Shown here piece by piece: positions 38,306 through 44,564 of a stretch of 64,000 nt of DNA (positions are counted from its first letter, which is position 1; the number at the start of each line of letters is the position of its first letter). Position numbers and translations under genes: made by a program. The stretch spans positions 1,867,404 to 1,931,403 of the forward strand of contig CAJFCJ010000007.1 in the NCBI GenBank assembly GCA_904063045.1, in the 5' to 3' direction. A model generated the notes under the pieces. The model searched no databases. It saw only the letters and a program-made list of their open reading frames with translations, and was not told where the DNA came from. The DNA comes from Dimorphilus gyrociliatus (lineage: Eukaryota; Animalia; Annelida).

Positions 38306-39397
38306 ATGACAATAAACTCAAGCTCCTCGGAAGTTATGAGTGGATCTGAAATGTTGTGGGTGTGTTGTTCTCCCGCCATTTTAGTTTTTGGAATTTGTGG
38401 AAATTTATTAACCCTATTAGTAATGCTCAGATCGAGAATGTCGGGTAATTCAACTAGCGTGTTCCTACCTGTATTGGCAGTTGCCGATAGTGTAGCGCTA
38501 GTGTCCGGAATAATACCTGAGTGGTTGGAGATGGCTCATATAATAAAACTGAAAGGTCTACACCCTTGGAGCTGTCGAACAGAAAAAGTCATCTTCTATT
38601 CATCTATTGACGCTTCGATTTGGACATTATTAGCATTTACCATTGACAGATGGTTGGCAGTCGTTTTTCCATTAAAAAAAACGTCCTGGTGCACTGAGCG
38701 CAGAGCAAAAATTGCCGTTTTAGTCGTTATATGTTCATCAATTGGGTTAAACAGTCATGTTCTCTGGACTAGAGGAACTGTTCGCGGGCTTGATAGATTG
38801 AAGAATGAAACTTGGACCAACCACTGTGGAAAACCGGAACCATACGCATACTTTGAAAAGTTTATACGTCCCTGGATTGTGTTTGGACTAGCGAATGCTT
38901 TGCCAGTTTTATTAATATGTTTTTGCAACACAATGATTGTCAGCGCTCTGATTCGAATACCACGCCGAGATGGCGCAATGGGTGTTCGAGATCGTGATAA
39001 GGCTAACGTTCTACAAACCACTTTCATGTGCCTTAGTGCTTCTTTTTTGTTTCTCTTTTGCGTAACACCAAGTATAATCGTACTCATAGGGCGCCCATGG
39101 TGGGACGAACGTTATTGGTATGGAGTTGTGAAAGCGGTAGCAAACCTTCTAACTCACGTTAACCATTCTGTAAACTTTCTTCTCTATTGTGTCAGTGGAA
39201 GGCGCTTTCGAGAAGAGCTCATTTCAATGCTACGCGGAGAAGAATCACCCACTAGTTTAAAGGCTCTACGACGAGCGACAATTATGGCAAGCATGGCATA
39301 TAACAGGAGAGAAACTTTGGGTACATTGGGCACATTAAGCACATTGGGACGCTCTTTCTCCTCGAATAATTGTCTCGATAGAGTCTCATGTGTCTAG
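38306..39397 (+). CDS. Intronless rhodopsin-class neuropeptide GPCR (FMRFamide / sex-peptide receptor-like group)
   Basis: GICGNLLTLLVM, LAVADS, DRWLAV and TM7 NHSVNFLLYCVSGRRFREEL (the NFxxY variant typical of this group). Confidence 0.88.
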   Translation: MTINSSSSEVMSGSEMLWVCCSPAILVFGICGNLLTLLVMLRSRMSGNSTSVFLPVLAVADSVALVSGIIPEWLEMAHIIKLKGLHPWSCRTEKVIFYSSIDASIWTLLAFTIDRWLAVVFPLKKTSWCTERRAKIAVLVVICSSIGLNSHVLWTRGTVRGLDRLKNETWTNHCGKPEPYAYFEKFIRPWIVFGLANALPVLLICFCNTMIVSALIRIPRRDGAMGVRDRDKANVLQTTFMCLSASFLFLFCVTPSIIVLIGRPWWDERYWYGVVKAVANLLTHVNHSVNFLLYCVSGRRFREELISMLRGEESPTSLKALRRATIMASMAYNRRETLGTLGTLSTLGRSFSSNNCLDRVSCV

Positions 39398-41677
39398 TCA
39401 TCAATGAAATAATTGTCAATCTTACAAATTCTAGTCCTCTTTGTTGTATAGTTTATAAACGGAATCAATATGTATATATTATGAAACAATTGAATGGTCG
39501 GTCATTCAATATATTCAGTTGCTCTGGCAAACTTTTCTCCAATGGTATCTGACTAGTGGAGGTATGTTACGTATGCGGAACTTGGTAAATGTGGGCGTAT
39601 TCATTTTCTTTACAGAGTTTCCGTAAGACTATGTTTCCCACAGATGGCGTCAAATTACTAGCTCTTTAGATAGGATTGATAGAGACCTAGCTCTCTTATT
39701 GATAGTAGGTCCATCTGCTTCAAAGTATCTATTTTCACTTTCCTATTGAAAAAGTACAGGCTAAAATGTAATTAGAGGCTTAGATAAAGCCTATCGTTCC
39801 AAAAGTAGCAACTATATAAACTGTTAGAACTGGTAATATTCGAATTAATCTAATATAATGAAAAAAGTTACGAGGGAAAATAAAGGATGACATCATAAAA
39901 ATTACAACTATTATATCTGACGGTTCCAATACATGCCCTGAGGGATTTTTTATTAAAGAAGACTGATGAATGGATAATTTTCGACAATTGTGATGAATCC
40001 CTGTCCAGTCATCATTTTTACACGTCCCTTTCCATGAGTAAGCCAAAGTCCGATCATTACATAAAAAATAACTGTACTTGAATTTTGCTTATTTAGGCAA
40101 TTGTCACAGGGGATGAAAAGAATTTAGAATTTCCATACACATTTTAAAATAGTTTTTAAAGACAATGTAAGAACGAACCCATTCTAAAAAAATTTGAATA
40201 CACGTCAATGATGTAGGGTTCTTTATGACAAAAATAACGATAGAAGTAAAGATTTTATTAATCGACAACGATCTCTATTGACACCTAAATAGAGTTTTTT
40301 CCCTCGTCTCTGCATTTGCAGTACACAGAAAAAGAATTACAGTCAATATTAACAATATCATAATCTGTAAAGGCAATTATTCTCACTGTTCATGTCCTTG
40401 TTAGTTTCATTTGAAGGCGATAGCCTAAAAAGTATTTATTGGATAAACTGTAGCTTACTTCAAATGTTGGTGAAGTCTGATAAAGCATATGATTTTCATT
40501 TCGAATTTTCCTTGCTTCCCTTTGAAATAATATTATTGATATTATATGTCCAAATATTCAGATGGACATGTATGAAGCACTGAACATTAATGCTTTCCGC
40601 ACTAATTACTATAATCAATACGTTTTATACTCGATTATTTAATATTTGATAAAATTTTATAGTAGTAACTAAAATTAGAAATAAAATCTAGTAAATAATT
40701 GTAAGATGCACTGGAATATGCCATAAAAAGTCCTCGAGACATTTTTTTCTATCTAAACTAATTGTTTGGGTATCCTTTCGTTTTAGTCAGGCTTTCTTTC
40801 GACTTTCTCTGCCTGTTCAACTGCTCTCTAGAAATTCTATGACATTTACGTGGTATCCAATTTTTCCATGATCTTCTTGGAAAATGTAATTTGTTAAATT
40901 CAACCAAACTGAGTTTTATGTGTAATTATTACAATTTTAACTCCACTCATTTTATGTCCATTTGTCCTTTATCCACTGAAAATTATTCTCTAAATAGCTA
41001 AATGCAAAACCGGTCAGTTACCTTTATAAGAGACACTTTCATTAGTATGTTGCAAGGCTTTATCGTTCATAGGTATGACATGCATGGCTATTAATGTTTA
41101 CGTGTGCTAAAATATGCATGAACAGTGGCTCAACAAATTATTTATAGCCATAAACGAGTGCATCACACGATATGAAAAATAAATAAAAGTGGTCAACATT
41201 AGTTGAAAATTTTTTATTCAGTATTTAATTCAACTGTTAACATTGTAAAGTTAACTTACCAAACACAATTGAAAGCATAGAAGTAAAAGAACATAAATAC
41301 TATATAGAAACAATTTTTTGACATAAACTGTTTCCTATGAAGAGCCTATGATTGGATCAGAGCCATCTAACGATTAGAGACAATGACGCCATCTCAAGTG
41401 AAAAACAATTACTGTATTTTAAACTCTCAACGAAACAATAGAAACGCGAGTATACTTTATGGGTACAAATGATATTGCCTATAACATTTCGTTAATTGTT
41501 ACTGAAATGAGTTATATATGCAACACAAAATCACAGACTAGGCGTGGGTCAGAACATAAAAAATTACGAAAATTTGATGCGCCAAGTCGAGCTCGCTCAT
41601 TTTGAGCTGTCATATCATTTCGCAAGTTTTTGGAAAGAGATTGCTAAAAAATGAGTTGGGAGAATAATCTCATAACA

Positions 41678-43199
41678 TTAGACGATGTGAAGAGGGCAAT
41701 GGAAGTTTGCTCTTTGACCATCACGTTGACCATTAGCCGACGGTCTAAGATATTGTAAAACTTTCCAGCTAAATGTAACTATGATAATAGCTACAAGACC
41801 ATCTAATAAATAATGATGAATTGAGTACATGCTTGCCCAGATAATCCATACAATGTATATCAGGAAATAGTTGCCTCCTGGAGGTCCAGTTAAATATACG
41901 GCAAAGGGCCAAGCAACGTGACCTGACGGAAACGATCCAAATATACAAGGATTACCACTATACATATTATGAAAGAGATGAGCGTGAAAGAGTTTATCAA
42001 CGCGGGCGAAAGCAGCTCCTTCACTAGGTTTAGCTGCAGCAACTGCGCTTCGTAAGTCTACGTCATTTCCGAGAGAGTCTACAAACCATGGAGGAGCTGT
42101 CGGCATGCATAACCAAACGACCATATGTAGCCACATAACTAGTGCAAGCAACTGTAAAAATCTTCCTGCATTTTCTGGCCGATTCGTGAGAAAGGCATAT
42201 ATCGGATAGAGAACAGGCCAAGCGTAATGTAATAAATAAGGAAGAGCTGCTAAGACATCTAATACAGAACAGTGTAAACTAGATACAATTCGATGAGGTT
42301 GAACAGTAAAAATCGCTTCTTCAATTCGGCTAATGGTGAAAACGTAAACGTCATCATCAGTTATTCCTAGAAAATGACGAAGTTTCACAAAATTTCCATA
42401 TACTGTCAGAAAAAGAAGAAAAGGCAAAGCTGACAAAGCCGTATTAACAAGGTAGGCTGATGGCCGGGATGAATCCTGACGAATAGGCCGGGAACATACT
42501 TTTCTCACTGCCCACTTGAGTCCTGCACATGCTTGCCAAATAACCAAACGTTTAAGACCTTCAACTGGGGATGCAGGCCGATTTTTATTGCTCTCAGTTT
42601 CCACTATAGAAGGCCGAGCAGCAGGCCAAGAAGCGGATCTAGAATGCCCGCTTATAACGTGTCCGGCAGCTTTTCCATATCTGGAGAGATAAATACATAA
42701 ATAAAAGAACTGGTTGAATTTAGTTTAGGGTTAATAGCGGTCAAGAAAACAAATTTATGTTTTAGCAACAGCAATGTTTGAACAATAGTCTGGATTTACA
42801 ACGCACCCTATCGTTTTTTCAAGAAATTATTGTATTGATTAGGATTTATTATAGGAAAAACAGGGTTAGCAACCGCTTATAGTTAACTCTGTTATCTAGA
42901 ACATTAAAGGCAAATTTAATTTAAGAATCACGTTTGGGTATACAAATAAACGTAAAAGATATAATGATTAATAGCATGACTGTCATTAAAAATAAATTAA
43001 ATTACTCATTTTACTAACGGGCAATAAAAATATCTCTCTTATCGATATTCGGCGTTATCTTTAGAGCAAAACGATACAGGGGTCAAAAGCGGCAGAAATC
43101 AAATGAGAACATCTAGGACAATACTTACGTTGATTGACCACCGTACTTAGATTCAAACACGGTACGTTGATCCAAAGGATCTCCCTCAATCTCCTCCAT
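41678..43199 (-). CDS. Aur1/Ipt1-type inositol phosphorylceramide synthase homologue (PAP2_3 family); exons 43129-43199 and 41678-42680
   Basis: LDVLAALPYLLHY, PTAPPWF, FARVDKLF, IFGSFPSGH and MYSIHHYLLD parallel the yeast Aur1 motifs (LDILAWLPY, PAAPPWY, LARIDKLL, FGAFPSLH, HHYFVD). Exon 1 MEEIEGDPLDQRTVFESKYGGQST joins in phase 2. Confidence 0.85.
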
Positions 43200-43958
43200 G
43201 GAGAACACGCCCATTAAGCAGTGGGCCTTTTAGCCGATATAAATTCAATTCTTAATTTCGTAATTCTTCAATATATTCTATGTTCCTTCTACTATCCTTT
43301 TTATTAGGTCTAAAAGATAAATATACACTATTGAGCGCGAAAGTATGCCGATACAATTCGCTGGTAAATCATATCGGCTTGGTACTCAATGGCTCAATGG
43401 CCGCCGTATTTATTTCGGCATGAAGCGACCTCTTTTGGTAGGATATGTCAGTATATTTTAGAGGCGCGCAATTCAAATTGTTCTCAATAGCAAATATTTT
43501 GTTAAATACAATAGTCAATAAACAATTGTATTATAATCTTGAGCGATATGAAAGATAGCTCTTTCGAATACCAGAATCTTTAATTAATTCTAGACGGTAT
43601 TTAATTTTTTTCCCATTATTACAGATTCCTATTTTCGGTTCATTAATTTAGAAAAACAATCTTAACCCGGATTGAAGGTTTACCGAAAACAAAGTTGAAC
43701 TAATTAGTTATATACGTAAATCGTTGCTTACATTTGAGAAGAAAAATCTATATGGTGGTTATCGCACAAAACAACTATATGAACTGATGACTCAGATACA
43801 CGCTGGAAGGACGTTTTATACAATGTGTATTAAACTTATAGCATATGATTAAAACTTTCATATATGCTTATAGTGATTTATAGCACAATAATAAACAAAA
43901 ATATATACAATAAAAACAAATAACAAAATCTACAGTCGTTCTCTAAAATTGTTTGTAG

Positions 43959-44564
43959 TTATGATTTCTTCAAACATTTTAGCAAATCTACTCCTTCCTT
44001 TGCTCTGTCTGGTATAAACGTTTGTAGAAGCTGCTTTAGTATTTTATTTTCATGACTCTGTTCTGCCAATTGACTCTTCAAGTTAGAATTTTCCTCTCGT
44101 AAAATATGTAAAGTTTTTTCAGTTTCTGCCTGTCTTTCCTTTGCCTTTTCACGGCATTTTCTGACAGATTCATTATTTTTTTGGCGTTTCTTCATGTATT
44201 CAAATGATCCTTTTTCCTCTCTCTTCCTCTTTGGAACTCTACCTTTACCTCTTCTAGTTAATGGCTCATTTGCTATTTCAGCTGAATCAGCTGGTTCTAT
44301 TTCAACTTTTACTAAAGGAGCTTCAATAATTCGACTATCCGGTTGTTTGAAATCAATACACATATCTTCATCAATCAATACATTATCAAATGATATTTCA
44401 TCAATGTTGGTGGTTGGAGTTAAATATTCCGAAACATTTACTGTTCCTTCCGTACTAGCTTCAATATTATTTAATCCAATTTCACTGGTCATAGGAGTTG
44501 GTGAAGTTGGACCAATATCGGAATCTATCTTCGCCATTGAATCGTAACTCTGAAAATATTCCAT
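43959..44564 (-). CDS. C/EBP-family bZIP factor (alpha/beta/delta-type, divergent), intronless
   Basis: KGSFEYMKKRQKNNESVRKCREKAKERQ basic region followed by a leucine zipper; acidic N-terminus with DEDMCIDF. Confidence 0.8.
   Translation of the reverse strand: MEYFQSYDSMAKIDSDIGPTSPTPMTSEIGLNNIEASTEGTVNVSEYLTPTTNIDEISFDNVLIDEDMCIDFKQPDSRIIEAPLVKVEIEPADSAEIANEPLTRRGKGRVPKRKREEKGSFEYMKKRQKNNESVRKCREKAKERQAETEKTLHILREENSNLKSQLAEQSHENKILKQLLQTFIPDRAKEGVDLLKCLKKS

Follow-up and report, generated by a model that had tools for sequence, protein, structure and literature searches.

An Aur1-family gene of the annelid Dimorphilus gyrociliatus and its probable role in transferring a phospho-head-group to ceramide

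Inositol-phosphorylceramide (IPC) synthase of the Aur1 type is described in reviews and drug-target papers as a fungal enzyme (the protozoan and plant enzymes have another fold) that is absent from mammals (PMC12122681). A reading of the letters of one stretch of the Dimorphilus gyrociliatus genome (here the sequence-only reading) had proposed a fungal-type Aur1 homologue in this marine annelid, overlooked so far and either anciently retained or horizontally acquired. The stretch, which we call the window, has 64,000 nucleotides (contig CAJFCJ010000007.1, positions 1,867,404 to 1,931,403, of assembly GCA_904063045.1). Is the gene a real one of this animal, where does it come from, and what does its product make?

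A spliced and expressed gene in an animal neighbourhood

The gene, DgyrCDS6057, has two exons and occupies positions 43199..41678 of the window on the minus strand; its spliced translation (357 a.a.) is 100% identical to the NCBI protein of that name (P0001). Exon 1 (43129..43382, minus strand) is spanned by RNA contigs from two runs (X1, record 4, and X2, record 8), and transcription reaches at least to about 43372-43382, which leaves a 5' UTR in front of the ATG at 43199. The coding part of this exon (43199..43129, minus strand) has 71 nt (23 codons plus 2 nt, phase 2). It is followed by an AT-rich spliceosomal intron of 448 nt with GT..AG boundaries (43128..42681, minus strand), and the resulting joint between 42680 and 43129 (CT..AC on the plus strand) is found in RNA-derived contigs of runs X1 (one contig, its shorter arm measuring 218 nt) and X7 (at a depth of 661). 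Exon 2 (42680..41678, minus strand) runs from the third base of codon 24 to codon 357 and the TAA stop (41680-41678), contains the entire catalytic domain, and is covered by RNA contigs from X1, X2 and X7. Transcript contigs extend beyond the stop codon into a 3' UTR (41400..41677, minus strand), and one X7 contig (record 9) carries another 824 nt past 41400. The RNA-derived joint and the identity to P0001 agree with the earlier gene model, in which a short 5' exon precedes a single exon holding the whole domain.

Strain X2 is 97-98% identical, and the coding sequence of DgyrCDS6057 differs between the strains by 18 synonymous and four non-synonymous changes. As a gene DgyrCDS6057 is genuine: it is spliced, expressed and under purifying selection.

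The gene is flanked by a GPCR-like ORF (38306-39397) and a bZIP_2 ORF (43959-44564), both animal genes, as expected from the metazoan neighbourhood described before, and the GC content of its region equals that of the flanks. A contaminant or a chimeric contig is rejected because the intron is confirmed by RNA, the composition matches the flanks and orthologues exist in other annelids; we saw no sign of a chimera at the gene.

Family, catalytic motifs and predicted fold

The Pfam family PAP2_3 (PF14378; in InterPro, the Aur1/Ipt1 inositolphosphotransferase domain) is matched with 56.9 bits (cut-off 27; E 3.2e-15) over positions 3-189 of the 190 in the profile. The match spans residues 91-281 of a 308-a.a. 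ORF (41678..42604, minus strand), equivalent to residues 140-330 of P0001, and the domain lies at 41762..42334 (minus strand; protein residues about 140-330). Among solved structures, yeast Aur1 is the only one matched by sequence at E<=10 (E 2e-12). Taken as sequence comparisons, the PAP2_3 and Aur1 matches far exceed chance expectation. All five motifs listed in the sequence-only reading (LDVLAALPY, PTAPPW, ARVDKL, FGSFPSGH and HHYLLD) are located in the 308-a.a. ORF, and its central claim, that an Aur1/Ipt1-family gene is present in an animal genome, holds on the evidence of Pfam, the PDB sequence match and RNA splicing.

The catalytic triad of Aur1 has been defined (PMC13133130; PMC12122681), and IPC synthesis in yeast is abolished by any of the substitutions H255A, H294A and D298A (PMC13133130). 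These three residues align with H278, H313 and D317 of the worm protein, where the triad is intact, as had been claimed. H278 ends the C2 motif P275-S276-G277-H278 (41918..41929, minus strand; HMMER alignment to 9vj3_A), and the nucleophile histidine and the activating aspartate belong to the C3 motif H312-H313-x3-D317 (41801..41818, minus strand; H293-H294-x3-D298 in Saccharomyces cerevisiae Aur1, ScAur1). An IPCS1-like motif, D165-x5-P171-Y172-x2-H175-x3-P179 (DVLAALPYLLHYAWP), is found at 42211..42259 (minus strand), with H175 corresponding to ScAur1 H157 and Y176 to F158. Altogether, ScAur1 H157, S253, H255, H293, H294 and D298 align with H175, S276, H278, H312, H313 and D317, and these six residues are invariant in our alignments of fungi, red algae, holozoans and annelids. 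So are the R-x-D and D..PY..H..P motifs, which are specific to Aur1-type synthases; PTAPPW is also common to the worm protein and ScAur1.

The likeness to Aur1 has clear bounds: identity is 20-23%, and C2 is PSGH in the worm protein versus PSLH in ScAur1. Compared with the published IPCS1 motif, D-h-h-n-W-x2-Y-x3-H-x3-P (PMC11402645), DVLAALPYLLHYAWP keeps D, P-Y, H and P, with A in place of W and a spacing of Y-x2-H. The IPCS2 motif (Y-x3-G-x3-G-L-x-R-x-D) is reduced to its A-F-A-R-V-D core (R250-x-D252), with AF in place of GL. The NCBIfam family NF052609 gives 57 bits, far below its equivalog cut-off of 480 bits. At its C-terminus the worm protein has an annelid-specific motif that sets it apart from ScAur1, C-P-L-H-I-V-COOH (41681..41698, minus strand), which is common to the annelid orthologues (..CPLNMV in Capitella, ..CSLNIV in Paralvinella; pattern C-P-[LF]-x-[IM]-V) and is, from its sequence, a possible sorting signal.

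An AF2 model of DgyrCDS6057 has a pLDDT of 82.6, with a core above 90. Foldseek with this model matches Aur1 at E 1.5e-8, LpxE at 4e-3 and SMSr (8ijq_A) at 0.067; in VIA-align, Aur1 reaches Z 23.2 (9vj4_A) and 22.8 over 236 residues with an rmsd of 3.1 A, compared with 14.2 for LpxE, 11.7 for SMSr and 10.3 for LPP1. The modelled fold is Aur1-like, and yeast Aur1 (the catalytic subunit of IPC synthase; PDB 9vj3, 9vj4, 9ivc) is by far its closest structure. Six core helices (97-119, 162-188, 192-215, 277-288, 293-309 and 315-335) superpose on TM3-TM8 of yeast Aur1, and a further helix (62-86) is modelled with lower confidence. Aur1 has eight TM helices (an N-terminal domain of TM1-2 and a core of TM3-8). 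The structural alignment leaves out the residues of Aur1 before 43, so TM1 of Aur1 probably has no counterpart in the worm protein, which is the shorter of the two. Cytosolic termini and a lumen-facing His278/His313/Asp317 triad are predicted.

The sphingomyelin synthase group (SMS1, SMS2 and SMSr; PF14360) and the lipid phosphate phosphatases (LPPs; PF01569) have in common with the worm protein the PAP2 core, a lumen- or exoplasm-facing H-H-D triad and a six-TM core. However, a Pfam scan (E up to 0.1) gave no match of DgyrCDS6057 to PF01569 (PAP2) or PF14360 (PAP2_C), and the LPP signatures K-x6-RP (C1) and SR-x5-H-x3-D (C3) are absent from it and from all 22 proteins of its clade that we checked (C1 is absent from ScAur1 as well). 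An ordinary LPP or SMS identity is rejected because both the motifs and the structure scores speak against it; the protein does not group with either family, and Aur1 is closest in sequence and in fold.

Relatives in other animals and the origin of the gene

Word-indexed protein searches found five matches when the query was the window protein by itself and five when it was a 25-sequence alignment, Trichoplax being the sole taxon named; the named annelid orthologues surfaced with another query, a short-branched member of the clade (P0006). A look-alike search of the ESM Atlas gave large bacterial and fungal PAP2_3 clusters only, with no close kin. The named animal homologues have the same domain and are of the same size class as the worm protein (about 290-335 a.a.), and their functions are predicted only: Capitella teleta CAPTEDRAFT_203978 and Paralvinella palmiformis LSH36_99g00015, which share its clade and C-terminal motif, and, in a sister clade with PSLH, Anneissia japonica XP_033126660 ('IPC synthase catalytic subunit AUR1-like'), Antedon mediterranea, Trichoplax TRIADDRAFT_61536 and Hydra vulgaris LOC100211216.

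Comparing all ORFs of the window by tblastn with five homologue-bearing contigs, we found the PAP2_3 gene as the only one in common and no shared neighbours. One of these contigs (L005) is of animal origin, with a Cys-loop receptor exon and a bHLH gene beside the homologue; another (L002) bears a reverse-transcriptase fragment. A study of metagenomes from wastewater nutrient-removal (activated-sludge) plants cites two JGI samples (3300056599 and 3300056999).

A literature search, in part loosely constrained, listed no study of Aur1-type enzymes from animals. The labels 'AUR1-like' or 'Aur1/Ipt1 domain' already stand on some animal homologues in RefSeq and UniRef. The term 'overlooked' is therefore right in so far as the animal proteins are uncharacterised and too strong otherwise: DgyrCDS6057 adds a new and as yet uncharacterised protein to a known family rather than a wholly overlooked one.

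In the PAP2_3/Aur1 phylogeny that had been suggested as a check, DgyrCDS6057 falls with the Capitella and Paralvinella proteins, members of two further annelid families, in a clade (clade A, support 100/99) that also includes many invertebrate contigs. It adjoins clade B (93/88), which is made up of Hydra, Anneissia, Antedon, Trichoplax and the unicellular holozoan Syssomonas; C2 is PSGH in clade A and PSLH in clade B. Rhodelphis joins the fungi and red algae in a group apart (100/98), with fungi as a clade of their own (100/99), and the bacterial PAP2_3 proteins lie outside in another (100/99). A 153-row mixture-model tree had given clades identical to those of the later, careful trees. Constraining clade A to group exclusively with fungal AUR1 costs 24.8 lnL (AU p=0.010, for groups named after inspection of the tree), and the label 'fungal-type' has to be dropped for a protein whose clade stands beside clade B.

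The sequence-only reading had left the origin between ancient retention and horizontal transfer. Our trees favour the former, an old vertical inheritance with many losses, because clade A adjoins an animal and holozoan clade, the fungal grouping is rejected and the bacteria are farther away; with sister groups in cnidarians, crinoids, placozoans and a holozoan, the gene would have been inherited by animals and lost from most animal lineages. Horizontal transfer from a fungus, an alga or a bacterium, or a misassembled contaminant, would fit the patchy spread among animals and the homologues in Myxococcota and Rhodobacteraceae (identity up to 34%). The bacterial proteins belong to the same family, have its catalytic motifs and come from producers of sphingolipids, but they keep to their separate clade. 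The RNA-confirmed GT-AG intron, the flank-like GC content and animal neighbours, the annelid orthologues with their common C-terminal motif, and the position of other animals and a holozoan protist as nearest outgroups, with the fungal grouping rejected, all count against such an origin, which we consider very improbable.

Proposed activity, its alternatives and what the family means

The best explanation of the whole, and in our view a fairly probable one, is an inherited Aur1-family gene whose product, a polytopic membrane enzyme, is a Kei1-independent, lumen-facing transferase of a phospho-head-group to ceramide, probably an IPC synthase. If the reaction follows that of Aur1, Asp317 would activate His313 for attack on the donor, a glycerophospholipid, at its phosphodiester; diacylglycerol would leave and a phospho-histidine head-group intermediate would form. 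His278 would then help to pass the head group on to ceramide, at its C1 hydroxyl. The donor would most likely be phosphatidylinositol and the product inositol-phosphoceramide. The enzyme would act as a transferase rather than a hydrolase, in its predicted topology and localisation, and its reaction would be analogous to the head-group transfer to ceramide by SMS enzymes.

Aur1 forms an obligate complex with Kei1 through EL2 (A123, Y129, G130, D131 and L137), TM8 and K274/K314. Its Kei1 or lipid contacts A123, Y129, G130, D131, L137 and K274 are replaced in the worm protein by R, F, T, V, V and G, and since they are not conserved they are evidence against a Kei1-type interface. The worm enzyme would probably need no such partner, as is the case for DdIPCS1 of Dictyostelium (DdCSS2), a non-fungal, Aur1-related enzyme that shows IPC synthase activity when produced by itself in liposomes and that resists aureobasidin A (PMC11402645). 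It is this published behaviour that we predict for the worm protein; in build DdIPCS1 may differ from it, with eight predicted TMs as in Aur1. The aureobasidin resistance positions F158 and A240 of Aur1 are Y176 and M263 in the worm protein, as in resistant mutants, and to judge from these residues the worm enzyme is probably insensitive to aureobasidin A.

Several observations point to inositol phosphate as the head group. The experimentally characterised precedents that we found, Aur1 and DdIPCS1 (PMC11402645), are inositol-phosphotransferases, and the NCBIfam name of NF052609, a bacterial family of the same fold, is phosphoinositol dihydroceramide synthase. Crinoids, which carry clade-B genes, contain glycosyl-inositolphosphoceramide gangliosides according to references 43 and 44 of PMC4393008. 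Against the IPC reading stand the low identity to Aur1 (just 20-23%), a subfamily different from that of every characterised enzyme, the partly kept fungal IPCS1 and IPCS2 motifs and the low NF052609 score. In addition, we know of no report of IPC from annelids. The TM5-TM6 loop, which is thought to determine the choice of head group (PMC12122681), diverges in the worm protein from the fungal one.

This divergent loop would also suit an enzyme of the same fold and chemistry that gives ceramide another head group, ethanolamine-phosphate or 2-aminoethylphosphonate from PE or its phosphono-analogue (a CPE or CAEP synthase), which we regard as unlikely. CPE and CAEP are typical sphingophospholipids of marine invertebrates. 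In clade A, C2 is PSGH as in LPP and SMS, versus PSLH in Aur1, and clade B is present in cnidarians (Hydra), animals rich in CAEP; a cnidarian lipid study is reportedly indexed under ceramide aminoethylphosphonate. However, every characterised PF14378 enzyme that we found uses phosphoinositol, and the glycolipids described for crinoids, which have clade-B genes, are of the IPC type. Molluscs are classic CAEP producers, and no named mollusc homologue surfaced in our searches, a weak point as these were not exhaustive for names. That clade A, and perhaps clade B, are CAEP synthases, acting after the PEP-mutase pathway to load ceramide with aminoethylphosphonyl taken from a phosphonoglyceride, seems to us quite doubtful; if true, an enzyme still missing for one of the typical sphingophospholipids of invertebrates would be identified, and the Aur1 fold would gain a new head-group chemistry.

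The protein could instead be a lipid phosphatase (hydrolysing a phospholipid, a lipid pyrophosphate or ceramide-1-phosphate) or pass its phospho-group to an acceptor other than ceramide, for example a glycolipid as Ipt1 does; Ipt1 too belongs to PF14378 (IPR026841). LpxE, PgpB, G6PC1 and LPP1 have the same superfamily fold (Z 10-14), and several clade-A proteins are annotated by JGI as 'membrane-associated phospholipid phosphatase'. But Aur1 scores about nine Z-units above any phosphatase, PF01569 stays below the reporting level (E 0.1), the C1 motif and the C3 arginine are missing from 22 out of 22 clade-A proteins checked, and the Aur1-type R-x-D and D..PY..H..P motifs are invariant. We hold a phosphatase or non-ceramide activity to be rather improbable, and the ceramide head-group transferase, probably an IPC synthase, remains our preferred reading.

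As the family, its fold and its chemistry are already known, the advance lies in distribution and physiology, not in mechanism. Natural variants of the Aur1 family are gained that are probably Kei1-independent and that match aureobasidin-resistant mutants at two residues, which is relevant to the specificity of Aur1-directed antifungals towards non-target invertebrates. The family offers a concrete enzyme candidate for the inositol-phosphoceramide gangliosides chemically described in feather stars, and a small laboratory annelid allows a direct test of which phosphosphingolipids are made and by which enzyme. The Aur1 family persists in annelids, expressed and under selection, with relatives in cnidarians, crinoids and placozoans; apparently, animals have these genes from the holozoan ancestor and vertebrates have lost them.

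Gene structure, transcripts and neighbours

The gene DgyrCDS6057 (minus strand, 43199 to 41678) consists of two exons: exon 1 begins with the ATG at 43199, has 71 coding bases and ends at a GTAAGT donor, the intron (43128..42681) is 448 nt long, and exon 2 extends from 42680 to a TAA stop codon (41680-41678). Its spliced translation (357 aa) matches the NCBI protein DgyrCDS6057 of Dimorphilus gyrociliatus letter for letter. Contigs assembled from public RNA libraries and aligned to the gene region cover the exons and leave the intron nearly free of coverage. The joint 42680|43129, which removes a GT..AG intron on the minus strand, is found in one metatranscriptome contig of run X1 and in a deep contig of run X7 (2017; depth about 660), in agreement with the two-exon model of the sequence-only reading. 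A minor splice form (depth about 24 vs about 660 in X7; also present in run X2) joins the donor of the main form (43129) to an alternative acceptor lying 70 nt downstream of it (joint 43129|43058), so that the remaining intron (42681-43058) stays in; it is probably non-productive, because it would bring in-frame stops.

The gene is carried by a 4.6-Mb contig, and the GC content of its region (about 0.32-0.36) is the same as that of the flanks. Upstream lies a single-exon ORF of 201 aa (43959-44564, minus strand; Pfam bZIP_2, E 9e-10), and ORF analysis found a 7TM receptor-like ORF (38306-39397) convergent with the gene. Both neighbours are animal-type genes, as had been claimed from the sequence. 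Nothing points to a chimeric contig or contamination, given the GC content and these neighbours. The X7 contig over exon 2 extends 824 nt past 41400 (region 40576-41400): either this is a 3' UTR of unusual length for so compact a genome, or the transcript overlaps that of the convergent receptor-like gene.

The marine metatranscriptome X2 contains a 97-98% identical relative of this gene, in which about 2-3% of sites over 41446-43382 differ, UTRs included (33 substitutions and one 5-nt deletion); the source is probably a second strain or a cryptic species of Dimorphilus from aquarium or marine samples. Of the 22 coding differences 18 are synonymous and four (in three codons) are non-synonymous, which indicates purifying selection on the gene.

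Similarity to Aur1 in sequence, fold and active site

Residues 140-330 of the worm protein are assigned to Pfam PAP2_3 (PF14378; 56.9 bits vs a cut-off of 27), and a PDB-wide sequence search (E<=10) matched only two S. cerevisiae Aur1 constructs (E 2e-12). An AlphaFold2 model built from a 127-sequence alignment has a mean pLDDT of 82.6 (>90 over residues 100-340). Foldseek with this model placed Aur1 at the top (E 1.5e-8), followed by LpxE (4e-3) and SMSr (0.07). Structural realignment superposed model residues 74-336 on Aur1 43-317 (236 residues, rmsd 3.1 A; Z 23.2 and 22.8), with lower Z for LpxE (14.2), G6PC1 (12.6), PgpB (12.4), SMSr (11.7) and LPP1 (10.3). Aur1 thus comes first in both comparisons, and the protein therefore does not group with SMS or the usual lipid phosphate phosphatases, the alternative raised in the sequence-only reading.

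All motifs quoted in that reading are found, collinear with yeast Aur1 in a HMMER alignment. Cryo-EM papers report that Aur1 H255, H294 and D298 are essential and H157, S253 and H293 contributory (PMC13133130, PMC12122681); the same alignment places these at H278/H313/D317 and H175/S276/H312 of the worm protein. The His-His-Asp triad is intact, as claimed: all six residues are invariant in alignments of annelid, cnidarian, crinoid and placozoan proteins, a holozoan protist, fungi, red algae and Rhodelphis, as are D165, P171-Y172, P179, P217, P221-W222 and D252, with R250 nearly so.

Distribution and origin

HMMER, run exhaustively over 1.84 billion cluster representatives, yielded 547 relatives (25 below E 1e-30), which were named by cluster look-ups and a word search. 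The annelid clade with the worm protein (clade A) includes Capitella teleta CAPTEDRAFT_203978 and Paralvinella palmiformis LSH36_99g00015. Clade B includes Anneissia japonica (which we take to be the species with the older name Comanthus japonica; XP_033126660, labelled 'IPC synthase catalytic subunit AUR1-like' in RefSeq), Antedon mediterranea, Trichoplax TRIADDRAFT_61536, Hydra vulgaris LOC100211216, Syssomonas multiformis and a EukProt entry labelled 'Inositol phosphorylceramide sy...'. Other eukaryotic relatives are fungal AUR1 (e.g. P0119, E 3e-97 to yeast Aur1) and proteins of Neocallimastix, Cyanidioschyzon and Rhodelphis. The best bacterial and archaeal relatives are from Myxococcota and Rhodobacteraceae (identity <=34%); a 153-row tree grouped fungal AUR1 with a clade of these bacteria (SH-aLRT 90), a grouping absent from the smaller careful trees.

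The contigs that carry clade-A members with no species name are eukaryotic, gene-poor and up to 8 Mb long; on one (L005) the gene adjoins an exon of a Cys-loop receptor and a bHLH gene. Two clade-A contigs come from JGI samples that are cited in a study of metagenomes from nutrient-removal (activated-sludge) plants. One clade-A gene (P0163; contigs L035:4047-5090 and L036:739-1782) is GC-rich and intronless, with gene-poor flanks of lower GC, and belongs to a cluster (that of P0014) of 11 near-identical members from many samples.

In a 79-row tree (IQ-TREE, LG+C20+F+G4 PMSF; ultrafast bootstrap/SH-aLRT) support was 100/100 for clade A, 99/93 for clade B, 100/100 for a further clade C with no named members and 100/95 for A+B+C, with fungi and bacteria each at 100/99. 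The link to fungal AUR1 in the sequence-only reading is disfavoured: forcing clade A and fungal AUR1 together lowers the log-likelihood by 24.8 units (AU p=0.010, for groups named after the tree was seen). In a 57-row tree with named annelids and Hydra added, rooted on bacteria, Dimorphilus is the first and longest branch of clade A (100/99), with Capitella and Paralvinella inside; clade B (93/88) is recovered, and on the other side from A+B+C (92/69) fungi, red algae and Rhodelphis form one group (100/98). Earlier, ancient retention and horizontal transfer had both been proposed. The separation of A+B+C from fungi and bacteria speaks for retention, and neither the 79-row nor the 57-row tree has a signal of transfer from fungi or bacteria. 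The simplest reading is that an old eukaryotic gene was retained in Holozoa and several animal phyla and lost from many others; clades A and B may be paralogues, or one gene evolving at different rates.

Putative product and departures from fungal Aur1

The experimentally characterised PF14378 members met in this analysis are phosphoinositol transferases. Aur1 transfers phosphoinositol from PI to ceramide (PMC13133130, PMC12122681), and DdIPCS1, an Aur1-related enzyme of Dictyostelium, works in liposomes when made alone and is aureobasidin A-resistant (PMC11402645). PMC4393008 (citing its refs 43 and 44) places glycosyl-inositolphosphoceramide gangliosides in feather stars, Comanthus japonica among them. 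Given the presumed synonymy with A. japonica, at least one of the animal groups with a clade-B gene makes IPC. By homology, the worm enzyme would be a lumen-facing ceramide phospho-head-group transferase, most probably with PI as donor and IPC as product, without Kei1; on balance we lean towards an IPC synthase. The worm protein scores far below the equivalog cut-off of the bacterial family NF052609 (NCBIfam; same fold, named phosphoinositol dihydroceramide synthase): 57 bits vs 480.

The least certain part of this assignment is the head group, and we know of no IPC from annelids. The TM5-TM6 region, proposed to determine donor specificity (PMC12122681), is divergent in the worm protein. Another head group on ceramide, e.g. 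phosphoethanolamine or aminoethylphosphonate, is therefore possible, if unlikely. It is about as unlikely that the protein is a phosphatase or a transferase to another acceptor. PAP2 hydrolases carry phosphate-binding signatures, C1 K-x6-RP and a C3 arginine (S-R-x5-H-x3-D), and neither occurs in the worm protein or in any of the 22 clade members checked; the Aur1 and SMS transferases lack them too.

The putative IPC synthase differs from fungal Aur1 in several features. Of two motifs described as specific to fungal IPC synthases (PMC11402645), IPCS1 is partly retained (the worm DVLAALPYLLHYAWP has A replacing W and Y-x2-H replacing Y-x3-H), and of IPCS2 only A-F-A-R-V-D remains. The C2 motif is PSGH, as in LPP and SMS, whereas Aur1 and the sister clade B have PSLH. 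Aur1 residues in contact with Kei1 or a bridging lipid (A123, Y129, G130, D131, L137 and K274) correspond to R, F, T, V, V and G, and the aureobasidin-resistance positions F158 and A240 to Y176 and M263. Unlike clade B and fungi, clade A has a C-terminal motif, C-P-[LF]-x-[IM]-V-COOH (residues 352-357, 41681-41698), kept in Dimorphilus, Capitella, Paralvinella and most other clade-A proteins; possible roles are an ER-export signal, a PDZ-type signal or a lipidated cysteine.

The existing annotation of the gene is 'DgyrCDS6057' only, and several animal homologues are already named Aur1/Ipt1-type in UniRef and RefSeq. Our literature search, partly too loosely constrained to weigh much, turned up no publication on animal enzymes of the Aur1 type. 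The worm protein is an uncharacterised enzyme of a known family, in a distinct subfamily and an unexpected host group, and not a new kind of system. The view that an Aur1-type sphingolipid synthase is missing from all animals stands corrected, and the gene is a candidate for the enzyme behind known invertebrate lipids that lack an enzymatic explanation.
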